Positions 4,042 through 36,339 of a stretch of DNA of 64,000 nt are shown in pieces (positions within the stretch are counted from its first letter, which is position 1; every line of letters begins with the position of its first letter). The stretch lies in sequence record OM728297.1. The stretch is one strand, 5' to 3'. The position numbers and the translations under genes were made by a program. The notes beneath the pieces are model-generated. The model did not search any database. It was not told the origin of the DNA and worked only from the letters and a program-made list of their open reading frames with translations.

Positions 4042-4220
4042 AAACATTTACAATCTTTATCACATAGTGAATGTAAACTATGATTTTCTTCTCTTAATTT
4101 ATCTCTCTCTTTTTTAATATTAGAAAAATGAAATAAATGAAGAAATATTAACATTAAAATCAGGATTGTAATAAAACGAATTACAATATATTTCATAATA
4201 CTATTATTATTATTATTCAT
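4032..4220 (-). CDS. Small single-pass membrane protein (about 62 aa)
   Basis: ATG 4220 after GAAGGGG, overlapping the upstream stop; hydrophobic IVIRFITILILMLIFLHLFHF then short coiled coil. Confidence 0.5.
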   Translation of the reverse strand: MNNNNNSIMKYIVIRFITILILMLIFLHLFHFSNIKKERDKLREENHSLHSLCDKDCKCLKR

Positions 4221-7047: not shown

Positions 7048-9144
7048 TCAAACTGCACAAGATTCGCAGATGTCATCTCCTGATTTACTTCTATTACGTA
7101 CATAGTAAAGACTCTTTAAACCACGTTTATTGGCATAATACATATGACCAACTAATTGGTCCGTAGGGATATCGCTATTAACAAATAAAGTAGTGGAAAT
7201 ACCCTGATCAATATGTTGTTGGATTACTGCAACCATGTCAATAATTTTATTTTGATCCATATCATATGCTGATTTGTAAGACCATTGAGTTCTACCATCT
7301 AAATATGGCATTGGATAGTATGTTGTAGAATCATGGTAAGTTCTATTTTCAATTCGACTCACAACAGGCATAATGGATTGAGTTGAGTTCTGTACATAGC
7401 TAATTGATTGTGTAGGTGCAATAGCAAGTCTATAAGCATGATATAAACCATTCTCTTTTACTTGTTTTGCTAATTCTGCCCAATCTTCTTTTGTTGGTAC
7501 AAAGATTCCTTCAAATAAATCTTTTACTTTTTGACTCTTAGGTGTATAATCATTTTCAATATAACGCTTGAAATAATTACCATTAGCATATTCAGAATCT
7601 TCAAAACGATGGAATTTCTTGTTTTTCTCAATAGCAGTTTCCATACTACGTCTAATACTATGGAAATTCATAATTGCAAAGAATACATTAGCAAAGTCTC
7701 TTGCTACAGCACTTTCATATGAAATACTATTTTTAGCAAGGAAGCCATGTAAGTTCATTGCTCCCAAACCAACTGAATGGAATAGCGCATTTGCTTTTCT
7801 TATAGATGGTGCGTTTTTGATATCACTCTTATCTGTTACAGATGTTAAAATATCCATTGCAATATCAACAGAATCTTTAAATTTTTTAGTCTCCATTACA
7901 TTAACGATATTTAATGATGCAAGGTTACAACTGATTCCCAATCCTAATTCATCTTCTTCTCCATAATCATTAATTGCTGATACTGAACTTAACTGCATAA
8001 TTTCAGTACAAAGGTTAGAGAATTTAATTTCACCAATTGCTTTTAAAGCATGTTCTTTATTAGCATTTGTTTTGAAGAACAGATAAGGGTATCCTGATTC
8101 TAATTGAGTCATTGCAATTTGATTCATTAGTTTCATTGGTGATAATTCACATACAAATTTCTTAATATTTGGATTATTAACTAATTCATCATACATTACA
8201 TCTAAATCCATCTCATCTAAAGGAATTCCATATTCTTTTTCGACACTATAAGGAGAGAATGTATAGAACTCTTCTTCTCCTGATTCTAGCAATTGAATAA
8301 ATTTATCAGGAACAATAATTCCAGTTGAAAGTGTTTTCATACGAATGCTATCGTCAGCATTGATTTTTTTAGTATTTAGGAAATGAATAATATCCCCATG
8401 AAAAATATTAAGATAAACAGCTCCTGAGCCTTTGCGTTGACCCATCTGATCAGCATAAGAGAAACTTTGTTCCAATAATTTCATTACAGGAATGACACCT
8501 TTAGCGGCATTTTCTTCACCATTTACTGGATCTCCAAGCATTCTTAATTTAGAAACATTTGTTGAAACCCCTCCACCAATTTTAGAGAGATACTTTGATT
8601 GTCCTTCAATATGACTAATTGAGTTTAGAGTATCATCAACTTCATCTAAGAAACAAGATACAAGTTCCCCTCTTCTTGCTTTACCAGCATTAAGGAAAGT
8701 AGGAGTAGCAGGTTGAACTCTTTGTTCTATCATTGCAACAGCGGCTTGAATTGCTTTGTCTAGATTCCCATCAAATAGATAGAGAGCAACAATAGCAATT
8801 CTATCTTGGTAAGTTTCTAAGTAATGTTTTTTATCTGTAGTTTTCAAGGCATAAGTACTATAAAATTTGGAGATAGCCATAAATGATTGGAAACTGAATG
8901 GTACTTTATTGATCGCTTTATAAACTTCTTCAATTTGTGATAAACTATAATCTTGAAATACATTATAGTAATAGTTATTTCCAATCAACCAATTAAGACG
9001 TTCAAGTAAATTTGGAAACTTAATAGAATATTCATTAATTTCTTCTGCAAAAGAAGAAATAGCTAATTTGTCATTTTCTAACTGCCAAAAACCATTGTCA
9101 CCTTTTTTAGTGATACTGTTGTTGTATTTGAGATAATCCTTCAT
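7048..9144 (-). CDS. nrdE: Ribonucleotide reductase class Ib alpha subunit
   Basis: PATPTFLNAG, LVSCFL, QRKGSG, SNLCTEI, SCNLASLN, APTQSISY, LKSLYYVR, terminal CESC; uninterrupted. Confidence 0.97.
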   Translation of the reverse strand: MKDYLKYNNSITKKGDNGFWQLENDKLAISSFAEEINEYSIKFPNLLERLNWLIGNNYYYNVFQDYSLSQIEEVYKAINKVPFSFQSFMAISKFYSTYALKTTDKKHYLETYQDRIAIVALYLFDGNLDKAIQAAVAMIEQRVQPATPTFLNAGKARRGELVSCFLDEVDDTLNSISHIEGQSKYLSKIGGGVSTNVSKLRMLGDPVNGEENAAKGVIPVMKLLEQSFSYADQMGQRKGSGAVYLNIFHGDIIHFLNTKKINADDSIRMKTLSTGIIVPDKFIQLLESGEEEFYTFSPYSVEKEYGIPLDEMDLDVMYDELVNNPNIKKFVCELSPMKLMNQIAMTQLESGYPYLFFKTNANKEHALKAIGEIKFSNLCTEIMQLSSVSAINDYGEEDELGLGISCNLASLNIVNVMETKKFKDSVDIAMDILTSVTDKSDIKNAPSIRKANALFHSVGLGAMNLHGFLAKNSISYESAVARDFANVFFAIMNFHSIRRSMETAIEKNKKFHRFEDSEYANGNYFKRYIENDYTPKSQKVKDLFEGIFVPTKEDWAELAKQVKENGLYHAYRLAIAPTQSISYVQNSTQSIMPVVSRIENRTYHDSTTYYPMPYLDGRTQWSYKSAYDMDQNKIIDMVAVIQQHIDQGISTTLFVNSDIPTDQLVGHMYYANKRGLKSLYYVRNRSKSGDDICESCAV

Positions 9145-22833: not shown

Positions 22834-23367
22834 TTATTCTCCATTTCTTATTTTTAAAGCACGTTCTTTATATTCAACAGCAAGACTATCTGCCATTTCT
22901 TGGTAGTAAGTATATGGATCATCTTTTAATGTAATGTTCTTTCCTTTGTGACCTCTTAACCAATTAAACTGTAATATGATACGTTTCCTAGCAAAATAAA
23001 TTTTATATTCATTTAATAATTTCCATAAATCTAGATTTTTTATTTCCCCAGAAGAATTTCTCCATCCATTTTTAATCCATTTATTTAATCTATCTCTAGC
23101 CCCTAGTATAGTATATTCTGAATCTGATATAATTTCAATGACTCCTATTTCATTAGGATTCTTTTCAACAAAATCTTTCATTTCTTTTAACCCTAAAATT
23201 ACACCCATTAATTCATTATAATTATTTGTTGATTTATCAAAAGCTTTTAATCGTTTACCTATTAATTGAAATTCTTCATTTACAAATAATGTTGCACATG
23301 TACCAAGAGCATCTGGTTTACCATTATGAAATGAAGCGGCATCTGAGAAAATATAAATCTTTTTCAT
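22834..23367 (-). CDS. rnhA: Ribonuclease HI
   Basis: FSDAA, TNNYNEL, ISDSEY, WIKNGW, NLDLW, WLRGH, MADSLA: D-E-D-D set intact. Confidence 0.93.
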   Translation of the reverse strand: MKKIYIFSDAASFHNGKPDALGTCATLFVNEEFQLIGKRLKAFDKSTNNYNELMGVILGLKEMKDFVEKNPNEIGVIEIISDSEYTILGARDRLNKWIKNGWRNSSGEIKNLDLWKLLNEYKIYFARKRIILQFNWLRGHKGKNITLKDDPYTYYQEMADSLAVEYKERALKIRNGE

Positions 23368-23402
23368 ATGAATCTCCTCCTAAAAAATATGTATTCATTA
23401 TA

Positions 23403-23415
23403 ATAATATATATTT
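23403..23415 (-). promoter_or_regulatory. Early promoter motif
   Basis: AAATATATATTAT upstream of RNase H. Confidence 0.75.
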
Positions 23416-23450
23416 GAAACATGTATATGTTATTAATAATAATTAAAATA

Positions 23451-23462
23451 AACAATATAATA
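23451..23462 (+). promoter_or_regulatory. Late promoter AACA-N6-TA
   Basis: AACA ATATAA TA upstream of 23494. Confidence 0.7.
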
Positions 23463-23493
23463 TTTCATAATACTATAAGGATGGTGAGAAAAA

Positions 23494-24198
23494 ATGTTAG
23501 TACCAAAGATGAATAATCCAAGTCTTATAAATGAAGATGAGTCTTATGAAGTTGTAATTGATTCTATTGATGATCGTGCAGACTTTTTTAATTTTGAAAT
23601 TACTTCTAATGAGAAGGAAAGACTAAAATTTATCAAACGAATTGAAAAGATAATTAGACGTTCATTTGAATATAAAACTTATATTGGCTTTTTAAAAAAT
23701 GAACTAGATTTGACAAAATGTACTTTCCTTCCAATGGTAGATACAAAGGAAATTAAAAAAGTTGGTTTAGAATTCCATCACTACCCTTTTACTCTTTTTG
23801 ATATTGTAAGCATAGTACTAGATGAACATATTCTTGTTAATGGAGAAAAAAGAATTAATCCATTTGATATTGCTGAAGAAGTCATGGAATTACATTATCA
23901 GAATTATATAGGGTTAGTTCCACTTACAAAAACTGTTCATGAGCTAGTACACTCTGGAAAGATTTTTGTAAACCTTAACTATGTATTTGGTAACTATACA
24001 AAGTTTATTAATAAGTATGAGTCAGCTAATACTGAAAATTTCCAAGTATTATTAGGTAATTTAGAACAGCTTAGTCAGAAAGAAGATAGAGAAGGAAGTA
24101 TTAATGGTGATATCCTAGACAAGAGTCTATTAAAACTTAATATTAAAGATATTGAAAATCCTAATAAGATTGAAGTAGAAGATGAACTTCTTGCATAA
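23494..24198 (+). CDS. Divergent HNH-like (His-Me finger) protein, paralog of 35674
   Basis: C...EFHHYPFT...GLVPLTKTVHELVHSG. Confidence 0.6.
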   Translation: MLVPKMNNPSLINEDESYEVVIDSIDDRADFFNFEITSNEKERLKFIKRIEKIIRRSFEYKTYIGFLKNELDLTKCTFLPMVDTKEIKKVGLEFHHYPFTLFDIVSIVLDEHILVNGEKRINPFDIAEEVMELHYQNYIGLVPLTKTVHELVHSGKIFVNLNYVFGNYTKFINKYESANTENFQVLLGNLEQLSQKEDREGSINGDILDKSLLKLNIKDIENPNKIEVEDELLA

Positions 24199-24257
24199 AT
24201 ATTAAGTTTTAAAAAATTTATTTCTCTTTTTTATTTTAAAAATTACCCTGCATTTCA

Positions 24258-24269
24258 AACAATTTAATA
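24258..24269 (+). promoter_or_regulatory. Late promoter AACA-N6-TA driving the structured RNA
   Basis: AACA ATTTAA TA; predicted +1 at 24269, directly before the first helix. Confidence 0.65.
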
Positions 24270-24525
24270 CGTGTGAGAGTAGCATCCTTTCACGATGTTC
24301 ACACGGAAGGAGATAGTGAGAGGTCTCCTTCTTACTCAACTGTTCGCAATGTGATTTCTCCATTTAGTACTCTGTGCATACCTCTATAGGTAAACTATGG
24401 GATGATCTTTGTCATTGGTTTTTGTTTCACCTCCGCATTAGTCACTGAGAGGTTTACCGATCCTCTTGGTGACAATGTGACTGTTCTAGTTGTTAATGTT
24501 GGTGCAATTCCAACAACAGTCACCA
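24269..24525 (+). ncRNA. Candidate structured non-coding RNA ending in a tRNA-like minihelix with CCA
   Basis: ORF-free, GC-richer island; at least five helices, a possible pseudoknot, acceptor stem + T-arm + ACCA at the 3' end. Confidence 0.65.
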
Positions 24526-24754
24526 AATCTAAAATATAAAATTAGCTTTTCATTGGCGGAAAACACTTTTTTATATTTAAGAAAATATAACCATCAAACG
24601 TTTCTATTCCCTATTAATAGTTAGATGATAACGATCTTTCTATTACATCCAATCCGATACTCCTTCTAATTTTTATTGGTCTAATCAATTCTGTTCGCCA
24701 TTGATTTAACTAATAAGATTTAGAAGGGGTAAATTATTGAAAGGAATGATTTAA

Positions 24755-25114
24755 ATGAATATAGTACTTGAAGCTTTGCTTCTAAAAAAGTATGAAAAAG
24801 AAATTGATGCATTACATACACATTTAAAAGCTGAAATAGAAAGAGCTATTAATATTTATAAAAATTTAGCTATTGAAGAACTCTTAGATTATAATAAAAA
24901 TTATGAACTACAAGAAGAATTCTCTTCTCCGTTTAAAAGCAAGTGGATTAAGAGTATTGAATATCTTACACATTTAAAAAGATCTATGAATCTTGGTCAA
25001 TTTAATATTCTTAAAGCAGATTTAGATGAGTTAGATAACCATCTTTCCCATCCAAAATTAAATAGAGACAAGACTATTATTCGTTCTTTAATTGATGAAA
25101 TATTAAAATTTTAA
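24755..25114 (+). CDS. Hypothetical protein
   Basis: RBS GAAAGGA; N-terminal VLE resembles the head-protein cleavage motif. Confidence 0.65.
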   Translation: MNIVLEALLLKKYEKEIDALHTHLKAEIERAINIYKNLAIEELLDYNKNYELQEEFSSPFKSKWIKSIEYLTHLKRSMNLGQFNILKADLDELDNHLSHPKLNRDKTIIRSLIDEILKF

Positions 25115-25148
25115 TTTCATCATTTTTTATAAAAATAATCTTACATTT

Positions 25149-25160
25149 AACATATAAATA
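25149..25160 (+). promoter_or_regulatory. Late promoter for tRNA-Asn
   Basis: AACA TATAAA TA, 30 nt upstream of the tRNA. Confidence 0.6.
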
Positions 25161-25190
25161 TGGAATAAATTTTACTCTTCTAGATTTTAT

Positions 25191-25262
25191 TCCCCTTTAG
25201 CTCAATGGTAGAGCATCTCACTGTTAATGAGATGGTTGCAAGTTCGAGTCTTGCAGGGGGAG
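25191..25262 (+). tRNA. trnN: tRNA-Asn(GTT), CCA not encoded
   Basis: Cloverleaf: TCCCCTT/AGGGGGA, GCTC/GAGC, TCTCA-CTGTTAA-TGAGA, GCAAG-TTCGAGT-CTTGC, G73. Confidence 0.95.
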
Positions 25263-25305
25263 TAAAGTCTAGAAGGGTTTTTACTGCCTATTTAGGAGGT
25301 CTATA

Positions 25306-25443
25306 ATGTTTAACTTCTTAATAATCTTATTTGATATATTTATAATATTATGTATGTTACCGTTTCTATTTATATTTAATTCAATGGGAAAAATAATCCT
25401 GCTAAAAAATAGGGAGAAGAATATAGATGTTAAAAAAGATTAG
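25306..25443 (+). CDS. Small membrane protein (45 aa, not in ORF track)
   Basis: RBS AGGAGG; MFNFLIILFDIFIILCMLPFLFIFNSMG... Confidence 0.5.
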   Translation: MFNFLIILFDIFIILCMLPFLFIFNSMGKIILLKNREKNIDVKKD

Positions 25444-25762
25444 ATATTTTATTAAATCAGATGTAGAGTTACATTGTCGTAATATTTGGGAAGATGGAGT
25501 TAAAAGGATTGATGGTTTTAATTTTATAAGTAAGAAACCATTTTCTAATAGTTATCAGTATCATGCACCTCTAACTCTTGAATGTACCTATAGAATGTTA
25601 AAACTGATTCAAAGATCTATAAAAGAAAATAAGAGATCATTAACTTTTAAAATTAATCATGGTATGTCATGTAGTGAATCTATTACTATATGGAAAGGTA
25701 GTTTTAAAAAAGCTGAAAAATTAATGTTTGATTTAATAGAAAATATTCAAAAACAATATTAA
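25427..25762 (+). CDS. Hypothetical protein
   Basis: RBS GGGAG; 111 aa. Confidence 0.6.
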   Translation: MLKKIRYFIKSDVELHCRNIWEDGVKRIDGFNFISKKPFSNSYQYHAPLTLECTYRMLKLIQRSIKENKRSLTFKINHGMSCSESITIWKGSFKKAEKLMFDLIENIQKQY

Positions 25763-25839: not shown

Positions 25840-26076
25840 ATGAAAGAAAAAGTTAAAGAATATGTTAAACAAGAATTAGACAAGCTATTAAATGGAGAAG
25901 CAAAAGAAATTAATTTAAGTGGTGTTTATCCACAAGCGCTATATGAGATACTGGGAGATTTTGAAATATCTGAAATGGAAACTAACGGTTGGCAAGCTGA
26001 TTATTGGATTACTACAGAAAAATATGAAATTGAAGGTTCAATGTTCTATGGTAATGCAAAAATTACATTAGTATAA
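25840..26076 (+). CDS. Hypothetical protein
   Basis: RBS GGAGTG; 78 aa; GWQADYW motif. Confidence 0.65.
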   Translation: MKEKVKEYVKQELDKLLNGEAKEINLSGVYPQALYEILGDFEISEMETNGWQADYWITTEKYEIEGSMFYGNAKITLV

Positions 26077-26102
26077 TTTGACTTAAATTTGGAGGAGTAT
26101 AA

Positions 26103-33399: not shown

Positions 33400-35616
33400 T
33401 TAAACTTCCTCATAAATAACCTTATCTTCTTGATTCTCTTCAGATACAGTTATTTTTACTGACTCTTTCAATAACATAGTATCATTATTGTTTAAACTAG
33501 ACTCATAATTAAAGCGATCAGATAATTTATAGATATCATGTTGATTTATTTGAATATCTGAAATTTTATATTGATCATGATAACCTATACCTTCTATTGG
33601 TGAGTGAATTGTATGAACTATTCGATCATCATTGAGAACCATATTAGAATCATCTTTATACAATTGAGATTGCCACCACATTACATCTCTTATATTTAAT
33701 GGTACTTTGATATTAAGATTAGTATCTAAGATATTAGAAATATCTAATAGATCGATAGTGCTTGCAAAACTATGATCTGTTGTTGCACTAAAATCATCAA
33801 ATAATTTAAGAGTATTAAATGTTTTATCATCAAATGAAAATACAATATTAGCTGATAAAAGATCAATAGTGTATGATTTAAAAATACTAATAATTGTATA
33901 AAGATATTTTTCTATATATGAACTTAGTCCAATAAAATTATTATTTGTAAAATATCTTCTTACTTTCGGATCACTAATATAGTTTCCAATTGATTCAGTT
34001 AATTCAAATACTCTGTCTTTATAAAAATTAGCTAATAATTTCTCACTATCTTTAATAGTATCTGGTACTTGAATATATTTATATAGATCATAATTTCTTG
34101 TTTTAATGTAATCACTAAATGTTTCACTATCACCATAAATAGAATTGCTGATTTTAGTCCTCATTTCAATATCCCATATCTCTTGAAGTTTTCTATAGAT
34201 ATGATAGTTATCAGTTTCTATAATCATATCTTCTAGATATTTTCGCATTTTCTCATTTGTATTAAAAACCTCTAAGAAATCTTCGATAGAATATTTTTCT
34301 TTCTCAAAACCTGTCATTTTAAAATTCTCAGTAAATTCAATAATTTCTTTATAATTATTGATTCTAGAAGCATTTTTAATAGCTATCTCTTTAATTTCAC
34401 TCATTATACTACTAATATCTATACTATTTTCTATGTCCCGATAGCCATAGATATAATTAATAACATCTGGATTCTTACTTATAGTATCCCTATAACCATG
34501 ACTTCTAATAACTAAAGATTGCAGAGCTACTATAGCATCATATATCTTGACTATATTTTCAGAAATACTTCCGTTAATAAATCCAAAGTCAATGCCTTCT
34601 TTTTGACTATAATCTAATTGAAACTTATTTAATATTGACATGAAATAAGCTAACCCAATTGTTTCATTCATAGCATCTATTGTAGTATCAACACTCATAT
34701 ATTTTGAATTAATAAAATTAAAAGGAATGCTCTTTACTTCATCTTCTGATGCTTGCCAATAAGGATCATTTGAAACAATTGAATTATAATCTAGAATAAT
34801 ATCTTTTTTAAAATCAACTTCTTTATCAGCAGGTGTTTTAAAAAACATTAGATAAGGATCATTATAGTTTAATTTCCCAGTTCTTGGATCTGTACTATAA
34901 CCCTTTGCCAATACATATCTATATATCTCTATATTATCAAAACCAAATAAATTGATAATTTCAAGAATAGCCTGATTAGTTCCTTTATGAGATAATAATG
35001 TATTAATCATTTTTAATAATCTTCTTTGATAGTTAATTGGCATATCCTCAAAATAATCAAGACCAACTGAAATAAATGCATTTTTAAGAGTCCTCATATC
35101 ATAAACATCTATATTAAAGAAATTTTCCATCTTTCTAGTTAGATATCTCTGGACGGTAGAGAATATTAAGAACAATTTAATAAATCCTCTATACATATCT
35201 TGGTTTTTAAATGCCTTAGTAGAGGTAACTTTATTATGATAATTTAGTACTTCATAGTAGCACTCATAAAATAGATTCATTTCTTCTCTTGATAAAGTAG
35301 GTCTTGTAGCTAATAAAATATGAAGATCTTTGGCAGTTCTAGAAGTTAAATAGTCTATACCCCAGTTATCATACAATTCTTTATAGTAACTATTTAACTC
35401 AGTATAACCATCAATTATTTTTTTCTTAGTTTCTTCATCTACATCATATAAACCTAAACGTATATTTATGAATTCATTAGACAAACGATAAGAATTTGTA
35501 GTTTCCAAGGAATCAGCTAATTCAGTATCTTTTAGAATGAGACCATTGGCGAACTCAAGGACGCTTTCAATCTCATTTATATCCCCTTGTGAGAGGACAC
35601 TATAATTGCTTCCCAA
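33400..35616 (-). CDS. Baseplate wedge protein (gp7/P2 gpI-like)
   Basis: RRLLKMINTLLSHKGTNQAILEIINLFG motif. Confidence 0.6.
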   Translation of the reverse strand: MGSNYSVLSQGDINEIESVLEFANGLILKDTELADSLETTNSYRLSNEFINIRLGLYDVDEETKKKIIDGYTELNSYYKELYDNWGIDYLTSRTAKDLHILLATRPTLSREEMNLFYECYYEVLNYHNKVTSTKAFKNQDMYRGFIKLFLIFSTVQRYLTRKMENFFNIDVYDMRTLKNAFISVGLDYFEDMPINYQRRLLKMINTLLSHKGTNQAILEIINLFGFDNIEIYRYVLAKGYSTDPRTGKLNYNDPYLMFFKTPADKEVDFKKDIILDYNSIVSNDPYWQASEDEVKSIPFNFINSKYMSVDTTIDAMNETIGLAYFMSILNKFQLDYSQKEGIDFGFINGSISENIVKIYDAIVALQSLVIRSHGYRDTISKNPDVINYIYGYRDIENSIDISSIMSEIKEIAIKNASRINNYKEIIEFTENFKMTGFEKEKYSIEDFLEVFNTNEKMRKYLEDMIIETDNYHIYRKLQEIWDIEMRTKISNSIYGDSETFSDYIKTRNYDLYKYIQVPDTIKDSEKLLANFYKDRVFELTESIGNYISDPKVRRYFTNNNFIGLSSYIEKYLYTIISIFKSYTIDLLSANIVFSFDDKTFNTLKLFDDFSATTDHSFASTIDLLDISNILDTNLNIKVPLNIRDVMWWQSQLYKDDSNMVLNDDRIVHTIHSPIEGIGYHDQYKISDIQINQHDIYKLSDRFNYESSLNNNDTMLLKESVKITVSEENQEDKVIYEEV

Positions 35617-35639
35617 TCGTGTTCACCTCGCTTATTATT

Positions 35640-35651
35640 TATCTTTATGTT
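35640..35651 (-). promoter_or_regulatory. Late promoter AACA-N6-TA
   Basis: AACA TAAAGA TA upstream of the wedge gene. Confidence 0.65.
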
Positions 35652-35673
35652 CAGAAATGGAGGAAATGTGAAA

Positions 35674-36339
35674 ATGATAAAAAAAATTAATAGTCCTGCT
35701 AAAGTCAATAATATTGTAAATATTCAGAGTGTACAGAATAATGATAATATTTTATTAAAAAATATGGATGGTTACTTCCAAGAAAAATTTTATTTTACTG
35801 ATATCTATGATGATACTAAAATGAAAAAATTAGTTGGATCTATTAAAAGTCAAATTAGATCGAGTGATGAGTATTCCCATTATATTGGTTTCCTTAAGAA
35901 TGAATTAGGTTTATCTCATTGTGCTGTTTTAGGAAATGTATCAGCAGAAGATGCGTCATTAGAGTTTCACCATTATCCTTTTACTATACATGACATAATT
36001 AATCTTTCAATTAGTAGAAATATCCTTTTAGGAAAAAAATTTAATTCTTTTACTATTATAAAGGAAGTATTAGATGATCATTATAATAATATAATAGGTC
36101 TAGTACCATTATCACTAACAGTTCATGAACTGGTTCATGCTGGTGAAATATTTGTTAATTTAAATCAAGTTTATGGTGATATAAATGAATTTAATAAAAA
36201 ATATTCATTTGCTATGACTGATGATATGATTGAAAAATTTAATAAATTAATAGAACTAAGTGAGAGTAATGCACCATATAGTGAAACTAATATTCTCAAA
36301 AAAATATATGATAAAATTGAAGATAACGATAGAACTTAA
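35674..36339 (+). CDS. Divergent HNH-like protein, paralog of 23494
   Basis: HCAVLG...EFHHYPFT...GLVPLSLTVHELVHAG; start moved behind GGAGG. Confidence 0.6.
   Translation: MIKKINSPAKVNNIVNIQSVQNNDNILLKNMDGYFQEKFYFTDIYDDTKMKKLVGSIKSQIRSSDEYSHYIGFLKNELGLSHCAVLGNVSAEDASLEFHHYPFTIHDIINLSISRNILLGKKFNSFTIIKEVLDDHYNNIIGLVPLSLTVHELVHAGEIFVNLNQVYGDINEFNKKYSFAMTDDMIEKFNKLIELSESNAPYSETNILKKIYDKIEDNDRT

Follow-up and report, generated by a model that had tools for sequence, protein, structure and literature searches.

What kind of RNA, if any, is specified by positions 24258-24525 of a 64,000-nt stretch of sequence record OM728297.1 (the whole of this stretch is called the window here)? The segment lies on the + strand in the 556-nt gap (24199-24754) between two protein-coding genes, gp242 and g243. 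In a blastn comparison with 50,697 phage records, the 651 nt around the segment are 100% identical to Bacillus phage vB_BsuM-Goe21 (Goe21), a member of the AR9/PBS1 phage group, and 98.9-99.4% identical to AR9, PBS1 and Internexus; the segment itself matches 7 records, all from the AR9 group. The longest open reading frames (ORFs) within the gap encode 38-53 amino acids (aa). The four records that were opened (AR9, two of PBS1 and Internexus) contain no annotated coding sequence (CDS) at this place, and the genes shown under the blastn match are the two flanking ones alone in each of the seven records. The GC content is 0.39-0.42 across 24250-24500 compared with about 0.25 in the flanks, and measured over 150 nt it is the highest among the ORF-free gaps of the window. 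An earlier note on this DNA had drawn attention to a gap of about 550 bp with no credible ORF and a GC-richer part, and both descriptions hold: the GC-rich structured stretch downstream of gp242 is real. The same note proposed an undescribed class of phage noncoding RNA (ncRNA). The reading that we favour, to which we give an even chance, is that 24258-24525 is the decayed front end of a tRNA array, still fired from a late promoter and now serving as leader of g243.

One indication of the origin of the segment is found at its 3′ end. Here a 7-bp acceptor stem, GACUGUU/AACAGUC (24479-85/24515-21), sits on a 5-bp T stem, GUUGG/CCAAC (24498-502/24510-14), with the 7-nt T loop UGCAAUU (24503-09). 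These are followed by a discriminator nucleotide, A24522, and an encoded CCA (24523-25), and are preceded by U at position -1, so that the top half of a tRNA can be recognized. A 12-nt linker stands where the D and anticodon arms would be. A covariance model (R1) built from 16 array tRNAs of loci that carry gp242 relatives matches this minihelix from end to end (model positions 1-76) with 19.2 bits, and in the alignment 5 nt take the place of the 34 model positions that form the D and anticodon arms. The E value amounts to 1.6e-4 when 1.1 kb is searched and to 0.009 for the whole 64-kb window, where the minihelix ranks second after tRNA-Asn (82 bits) and ahead of the next match at 13.6 bits.

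The specificity of this match was assessed with shuffled sequences. The bare geometry (7 bp plus 5 bp with a 7-nt loop plus NCCA, G-U pairs allowed) occurs in 66 of 200 shuffled windows, whereas all 12 pairs of the minihelix are of the Watson-Crick type, which is matched by 8 of 400 shuffles, and no shuffle of 400 does so when the T-loop letters U..C.A are added to the geometry. The T loop keeps U54, C56, A57 and A58. Position 55 is G, and the 27 intact array tRNAs with a match to the T-arm pattern all carry TTC[AG]A, with U there. A four-arm cloverleaf was not found, as ARAGORN calls no gene and Rfam gives no match to its tRNA family (RF00005) even at E values up to 10. Neither program detects a transfer-messenger RNA (tmRNA) at the segment, and acceptor pair 3-70 is C-G. 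The earlier note had recognized the tRNA-like 3′ end and had set aside tmRNA, signal recognition particle (SRP) RNA and RNase P RNA; the end-to-end model match, ACCA included, bears out the former judgement, and ARAGORN and Rfam, which find none of the three RNAs at the segment, the latter. In view of these signatures, the 3′ module 24479-24525 is most likely a tRNA shorn of its D and anticodon arms.

Additional information on the identity of the segment comes from the genomic locations of gp242 homologs. This gene family, in which no Pfam domain is found, also occurs in BpSp and in jumbo phages of Bacillus, Staphylococcus, Listeria and Yersinia. Nine distinct loci were fetched around gp242 relatives (66-73%) on metagenomic contigs of jumbo-phage size. 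In four of the nine (L008, L009, L010 and L013) the gp242 homolog is followed by 8-9 tRNA genes, and in a fifth (L022) by a single tRNA; loci L024 and L025 end too near the homolog to show an array. The array tRNAs are of the Ser, Asp, Thr, Trp, Tyr, Asn, Arg, Leu, Cys and Met types, and most encode CCA. As arrays occupy the same position in these relatives, the Goe21 segment sits at the position of an array front. The flanks of tRNA-Asn in Goe21 and L013 are homologous, with 75% identity over 108 nt. Furthermore, the late-promoter motif followed by a short leader with a hairpin is present at the position of the Goe21 promoter in L013, L014 and L022, and in L013 and L022 the tRNAs follow behind this unit. 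The 12-mer of the Goe21 promoter also precedes tRNA-Asn in L008 (8371-8382). In the literature that we found, neither the tRNA-derived nature of the 3′ module nor its synteny with tRNA arrays is described.

Incomplete tRNAs are also present within the arrays of the relatives. Two truncated tRNAs in L010 (7934-7992 and 7996-8058; 33 and 26 bits) lack the anticodon arm, a tRNA at L013 4504-4586 has an oversized anticodon loop, and orphan T arms are found in L009 and L013. Three RNAs (L009 5853-5960 and 6157-6328; L013 3921-4097) combine what seems to be an acceptor stem with a canonical T arm (GGUUCGAUUCC), and 75-130 nt replace their D and anticodon arms; one carries G3-U70, and neither ARAGORN nor Rfam calls any of the three. 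Structured spacers that are not tRNAs lie behind tRNA-Tyr in L008 (8151-8212), L013 (4191-4326) and L010 (7707-7840). The first of these is a 62-nt cloverleaf-shaped fold with no tRNA sequence signatures. Rfam matches none of these spacers, which may be conserved tRNA-array RNAs.

The start of the transcript is established by published data. Motif AACA-N6-TA occurs 77 times in the window, and 84 matches are expected by chance; the motif by itself is therefore uninformative, contrary to the use that the earlier note had made of it. The site itself, however, has been validated by differential RNA sequencing (dRNA-seq) of AR9. Lavysh et al. (2017; PMC5312081) report in their Table S3 a primary late transcription start site (TSS) at AR9 207979 (+), with a Terminator exonuclease (TEX) enrichment of 2.02 and a step height of 73 compared with 2101 for the next promoter. 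The upstream sequence given there (...aaattaccctgcatttcaaacaatttaatA) is the same as that of the Goe21 site, and AR9 207979 (position 4120 of locus L001) aligns to window position 24269. Placement of +1 directly before helix 1, as had been predicted from the letters, is thus right to the base. With AACA-N6-T-A/G and a 5′ end mapped at the last base, the site has the make-up of a late AR9 transcription unit served by the non-virion RNA polymerase.

The row for AR9 207979 in Table S3 is labelled 'tRNA' and its untranslated region (UTR) length is left blank (PMC5312081). We propose a different interpretation of this entry, as the 24269 start lies 921 nt upstream of tRNA-Asn, with g243 in between, and tRNA-Asn has a separate late TSS (AR9 208874 = window 25160) located 30 nt upstream of the tRNA (PMC5312081). 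No TSS is listed for g243 itself, and g243 is a late gene, with values of 1.5, 572 and 2326 at 5, 20 and 40 min and 3-10 times the abundance of gp242 (PMC5312081). A search of 23300-25500 gave no terminator-like site, and hence none between the structured part and g243. With neither a terminator-like site nor a listed TSS of g243, the simplest reading is a 486-nt g243 leader, and g243 is probably the gene served by the 24269 start. The features of the region are collected in the table below.

Table. Features of the gp242 to tRNA-Asn region, in window coordinates
Feature	Coordinates	Strand	Basis or detail
gp242, conserved jumbo-phage protein, synteny anchor	23494..24198	+	214 homologs
AR9-type late promoter AACAATTTAATA, start at A24269	24258..24269	+	Motif search and published dRNA-seq TSS
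Helix 1, 7-bp CGUGUGA/UCACACG, 24270-76/24299-305	24270..24305	+	Pair probability 0.87
Helix 2, 9-bp GAAGGAGAU/GUCUCCUUC, 8-nt loop	24306..24331	+	Minimum free energy (MFE), centroid and maximum expected accuracy structures; pair probability 0.60
Middle part, no robust fold	24332..24435	+	MFE and centroid structures disagree
Long hairpin, 12-bp core 24441-52/24462-73, 9-nt loop UUUACCGAU, CAUU/AAUG extension	24436..24477	+	Pair probability 1.00
Truncated tRNA (minihelix), most likely assignment	24479..24525	+	R1 covariance-model match, shuffle tests
AT-rich rest of leader	24526..24754	+	Imperfect long hairpin 24658-24731; ribosome-binding site (RBS) GAAAGGAA 24739-46
g243, 119-aa late gene, AR9/PBS1 group only	24755..25114	+	ORF and homolog search
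tRNA-Asn late promoter	25149-25160	+	AR9 TSS 208874 = window 25160
tRNA-Asn(GUU), only intact tRNA in region	25190..25263	+	ARAGORN; Rfam 71.8 bits

These observations can be combined into the following model. In the AR9/PBS1 lineage, an ancestral array would have shrunk to a single intact tRNA (Asn), and the non-virion RNA polymerase would have continued to transcribe the remnant from the late promoter of the array at A24269. The lineage-specific gene g243 would then have come between the remnant and tRNA-Asn, which makes the remnant the first 258 nt of the 486-nt 5′ leader. Bacterial RNase P, 3′ trimming and CCA enzymes recognize the stacked acceptor and T stems, U at -1, the discriminator A and CCA. 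As the acceptor/T stack, the U at -1 and ACCA have all been kept, the transcript that reads through from 24269 into g243, as we suppose, is probably cut by RNase P at the 5′ side of the truncated tRNA. Such a cut is predicted to release a 5′ piece of about 210 nt and the minihelix (about 47 nt), and to leave the g243 mRNA with a 5′ end made by processing. According to this model, the remnant would have no independent function.

A leader of this kind might instead be retained because it acts in cis. The structure at the 5′ end and the hairpin at 24658-24731 would then govern how stable the g243 mRNA is or how it is translated, for example through 5′-end protection or as an entry site for RNase III or RNase Y. 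AR9 has 5′ UTRs of up to 491 nt, some of which have been suggested to control translation (PMC5312081), and the arrangement of the g243 leader is suited to such a role, with a stable stem that begins 1 nt past +1 and a long hairpin directly before the RBS. However, the RBS is not sequestered in the predicted folds, no riboswitch or leader family of Rfam matches, and the hairpin at 24658-24731 gives only sub-threshold, miRNA-like Rfam hits. Among 5.8 billion proteins the only homolog of g243 is Internexus_124; the confinement of this gene to the AR9/PBS1 lineage leaves no leader for comparison, and for the same reason its product, gp243, was discarded as a synteny anchor. We therefore regard a cis-regulatory leader as improbable.

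The transcript 24269-24526 has an MFE of -77.7 kcal/mol (z = -3.05), and none of 200 shuffles is as good. For 24258-24540 the z value is -3.39 on the + strand compared with -2.00 on the - strand. The view that the segment is structured receives support. Of the many G-U pairs that had been cited for structure at the RNA level, only 4 are present among about 45 robust pairs. Helix 1, its inner stem, helix 2, the 12-bp hairpin and the minihelix, all of which the earlier note had read by eye, are recovered with pair probabilities of 0.60-1.00, whereas 24332-24435 has no robust fold. The ensemble covers nested pairs, and the pseudoknot GAGUA/UACUC of the earlier note is a candidate.

Within helix 1 there is a 5-nt bulge (GAGUA) and a 5-bp inner stem, GCAUC/GAUGU (0.93), which is closed by the 7-nt loop CUUUCAC. 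This inner hairpin has the geometry of an anticodon arm, but its score with the R1 tRNA model (3.5 bits, E = 2.3) is not significant. For helix 2, the register favoured by the fold comprises 9 bp (24306-14/24323-31). An anti-Shine-Dalgarno-like sequence, CACCUCC, is present in the middle part at 24428-34. The long hairpin 24436-24477 is found in all predicted structures, and the pair probabilities of the minihelix are 0.60 for the acceptor stem and 0.75 for the T stem. The sequence ACTGTTC occurs twice (24341-24348 and 24480-24487), and the far copy can pair with the 3′ acceptor strand. In the MFE structure this copy closes a 186-nt multibranch onto the T arm, and in the centroid structure the near copy is used, which gives the minihelix. 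The doubled sequence may represent a conformational alternative or the trace of a duplication.

The structured segment could give rise to a discrete, functional late ncRNA similar to T4 RNAC and RNAD, either as a species of about 258 nt or as an RNA of about 210 nt plus the 47-nt minihelix after RNase P cleavage. The mimic of the tRNA top half might serve as a decoy for RNase P, CCA-adding enzyme, EF-Tu or a tRNA-directed defence nuclease, or the minihelix might stabilize the 3′ end. The decoy idea is speculative, as are the packaged RNA and the guide that the earlier note had also suggested. Such an RNA would have its own TEX-enriched late TSS, a fold that is better than those of shuffled sequences and stronger on the + strand, and an intact minihelix with encoded ACCA. 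The apparently conserved, structured non-tRNA spacers in the arrays of relatives, such as those behind tRNA-Tyr in L008, L010 and L013, agree with the existence of RNAs of this type, and T4 provides a precedent with two late small RNAs from its tRNA region (PMC3014915, PMC9697503). On the other hand, the 3′ end would be undefined, as no terminator-like site is present, the step at the TSS is modest, the T loop has G rather than U at position 55, and an RNA that lacks an anticodon arm offers nothing to anticodon nucleases. Homologs and covariation, which are considered next, are likewise lacking. On balance, we consider a discrete functional RNA possible, although rather unlikely.

Evidence for a conserved RNA would be expected to come from families and diverged homologs of the 210-nt body. 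Rfam, for which the earlier note had called, yields tRNA-Asn as the sole hit in the whole window at the gathering score, and thus no match of the segment to ROOL, GOLLD, ribozymes, riboswitches, 6S, RNase P, SRP, Y RNA or HEARO/omega RNA. When E values up to 10 were allowed for 24150-24800, nothing overlapped 24258-24490 on the + strand, and such hits as there were, all far under gathering, are confined to downstream positions or to the - strand. Comparisons of 24258-24760 with the syntenic loci L004 and L008-L014 by blastn and nhmmer yielded nothing beyond a match of 29 nt in the T arm. For the body (24270-24478), neither R1 nor a class-II tRNA model (R2) gives a significant signal; the latter was dropped, as it found only the same T arm again and added nothing.

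A third covariance model (R3), of helix 1 plus helix 2, was run against the loci of relatives and gave a best match of 15 bits (E = 0.11) at L008 8264-8334, with a weak resemblance of helix 2 to the hairpin at 8299-8329. Among ten array spacers compared by Smith-Waterman alignment, only L008 8142-8345 stands out, matching Goe21 24449-24525 with z = 3.3 (p = 0.007 before correction for ten tests). This spacer adjoins, on the upstream side, the tRNA-Asn promoter of that phage, which has the same 12-mer as Goe21. The alignment is suggestive of common descent but is not proof, and because R3 and Smith-Waterman place different parts of Goe21 in the L008 spacer, no homology is claimed. A 22-mer of the minihelix found five hits in metagenome and genome collections, all of which are chance matches, as their flanks show no similarity.

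Diverged homologs of the body were therefore not found by blastn, nhmmer, covariance model or 22-mer scan, and the collection of relatives that had been recommended consists only of AR9-group copies that are about 99% identical. As a consequence, no conservation or covariation, and none of the compensatory changes that mark a conserved structured ncRNA, can be cited in its support. Taken with a TSS that was already published and a synteny that suggests an ordinary origin, these findings do not sustain the proposal of an undescribed ncRNA class. We regard the segment as a tRNA-derived element of the phage tRNA region, for which there is as yet no evidence of a new RNA class.

Variation inside the AR9/PBS1 group is correspondingly sparse. 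Among five genomes compared, the RNA differs at two places. In PBS1, A24516G changes an acceptor U-A pair to U-G and pairing is kept, a point in favour of a discrete RNA. Goe21 lacks 4 nt (TCTT) after 24396 that are present in AR9, PBS1 and Internexus, in a part that is not robustly folded. With a background divergence of about 0.75%, these two differences carry no statistical weight.

The location of the 4-nt difference also bears on the idea that the segment encodes small proteins, as it falls in the 12-nt gap between ORF1 (24273-24389; 38 aa, GTG start) and ORF2 (24402-24539; 45 aa, with a hydrophobic N-terminus). The coding score of ORF2 is at the 5th percentile of real genes and not below it, but that of ORF1 is under every 40-codon window of 33 training genes. 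GC content at third codon positions (GC3) is 0.31-0.32, compared with a mean of 0.17, and a good RBS is not present. ORF2 belongs to no small-protein family among 1.84 billion representatives, with two repeat-protein matches only, and Pfam gives nothing; nor, as described above, is any product annotated between the flanking genes. On the grounds of poor coding score, high GC3 and lack of homologs, we rejected this explanation as very improbable.

Several observations weigh against the view that the segment is a decayed array front. Because the body carries no significant tRNA signal in either tRNA model, the label of array remnant follows, for the body, from its position only. A neutral relic would be expected to erode if the deletion is old, yet 12 perfect Watson-Crick pairs and ACCA have been kept and the fold has the low z value given above. 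The only substitution in the RNA preserves a pair, a point whose weight is almost nil at the divergence of these genomes. Finally, tRNAs are not seen downstream of the gp242 homolog in L011, L012 (which ends 187 nt past the gene) and L014, or within the 5 kb fetched downstream in BpSp (a 56% relative), and thus an array is not universal at this position.

A more far-reaching proposal, which we hold to be distinctly unlikely, is that the segment is a discrete late RNA of the AR9 group that ends in a tRNA top half, and that the minihelix or the 210-nt body released by RNase P acts in trans. Such an RNA might titrate a host protein involved in tRNA processing or in tRNA-targeting defence, or might be a factor like RNAC and RNAD. 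Preservation of the minihelix would then reflect selection and not recent decay. A stable trans-acting RNA would join T4 RNAC and RNAD as an unexplained phage RNA, and would be easier to study than these, as RNA-seq data are already at hand (GSE87573) for AR9, a phage that infects Bacillus subtilis 168.

If the decayed-array reading is correct, the locus illustrates the decay of tRNA arrays in jumbo phages: where relatives hold 8-9 tRNAs together with tRNA-shaped pieces, the AR9/PBS1 lineage would retain one tRNA, a promoter and a truncated tRNA in a gene leader. Moreover, if RNase P cleaves at the minihelix, this would be a simple case from a bacterial virus of a tRNA-like element that processes a longer transcript.

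Some further features of the region were noted in passing. The units of L013 (3697-3790), L014 (6743-6830) and L022 (1264-1345) share the order promoter motif, GUUCAUUA..., (A)CCUCCUUUC and a perfect hairpin. In L013 and L014 CCUCCUUUC presumably resembles, over 9-10 nt, the anti-Shine-Dalgarno 3′ end of 16S rRNA, and Goe21 carries CAUCCUUUCAC at a comparable distance from +1. An interpretation of the L013 and L014 leader as a minus-strand mini-ORF was rejected, as L022 has only two codons there. Genes for 2H-phosphoesterase/LigT-like proteins (2′-5′ RNA ligase family) and PD-(D/E)XK proteins are interspersed in the arrays of L008, L009, L010 and L013; the former are located at L008 6098-6649, L009 6520-7071, L010 10202-10728 and, in a further locus, L024 1296-1850, and L008 has PD-(D/E)XK genes as well. 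Neither type of gene is annotated in AR9 203,860-212,514.

A second AACA-N6-TA motif is located at 24562-24573, where no TSS is reported. A paralog of gp242 (AR9 g261) is encoded at 35647-36339, and the two have EFHHYPFT and TVHELVH motifs in common. The published late TSS of AR9 g261 uses the identical 12-mer, AACAATTTAATA (35171-35182), and its 491-nt UTR runs antisense to a 738-aa gene. A paralogous RNA was suspected behind this 12-mer at 35182-35646, but was rejected, as the region is antisense to that gene, which has a TTG start, and contains no non-coding gap.

The tRNA-Asn gene is itself variable. The PBS1 tRNA-Asn(GUU) is very unlike that of AR9 and Goe21, and the immediately surrounding DNA is identical (window 25100-25320; L002 4010-4240), which has the appearance of a cassette exchange. 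On visual comparison, the PBS1 tRNA is similar to that of L008 and the AR9/Goe21 tRNA to that of L013; AR9 differs from Goe21 by an A to C change beside the anticodon. Judged from sequence, these differences suggest strong, recurrent selection on this one tRNA. A 33-mer of tRNA-Asn, tried as an anchor in viral contigs, found nothing, as it has one mismatch to AR9 and PBS1 has a different tRNA-Asn. About 235 nt of Goe21 (25857-26091), which include most of a 78-aa ORF (25840-26076), are absent from AR9 and PBS1.

Several known systems combine tRNA-like elements with other structured RNA. As in tmRNA and YrlA, the Goe21 segment joins an acceptor/T-arm mimic that has no anticodon arm to another structured domain. 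Unlike these RNAs, it lacks a G3-U70 pair, a tag reading frame and a Ro-binding stem, and ARAGORN and Rfam find neither RNA; its acceptor stem is closed locally and not, as in tmRNA, by the 5′ end of the transcript. The location of a tRNA-like piece behind a longer structured RNA is reminiscent of MALAT1-mascRNA and of viral tRNA-like elements. As in MALAT1-mascRNA, RNase P could set the 3′ end of the upstream RNA and free a small tRNA-like piece, to judge from the 12-bp stack, U at -1 and ACCA. Those systems, however, are eukaryotic or viral and are full cloverleaf mimics, whereas cleavage in Goe21 is a prediction.

In T4, RNAC and RNAD are matured together with the tRNAs. Also known as stable RNA species 1 and 2, they are late small RNAs from the tRNA region whose function is unknown (PMC3014915, PMC9697503). 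The Goe21 segment shares with them its place in the position of a tRNA array and its late TSS, but it has no sequence similarity to them by blastn against the 50,697 phage records and differs in size and fold. In addition, the T4 RNAs are stable species, and a discrete Goe21 species is putative. Close parallels are the truncated tRNA genes (pseudo-tRNAs) of phage tRNA gene clusters, as the element occupies the place of the tRNA array of its relatives, matches a tRNA model from end to end and has counterparts in the internally deleted tRNAs of these relatives. The truncated tRNAs of the relatives differ from it in that both the D and anticodon arms are gone from the Goe21 element and a clean 12-bp minihelix remains. 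Unlike phage pseudo-tRNAs, moreover, the Goe21 element comes last in a structured body of 210 nt and belongs to the leader of a protein-coding gene.

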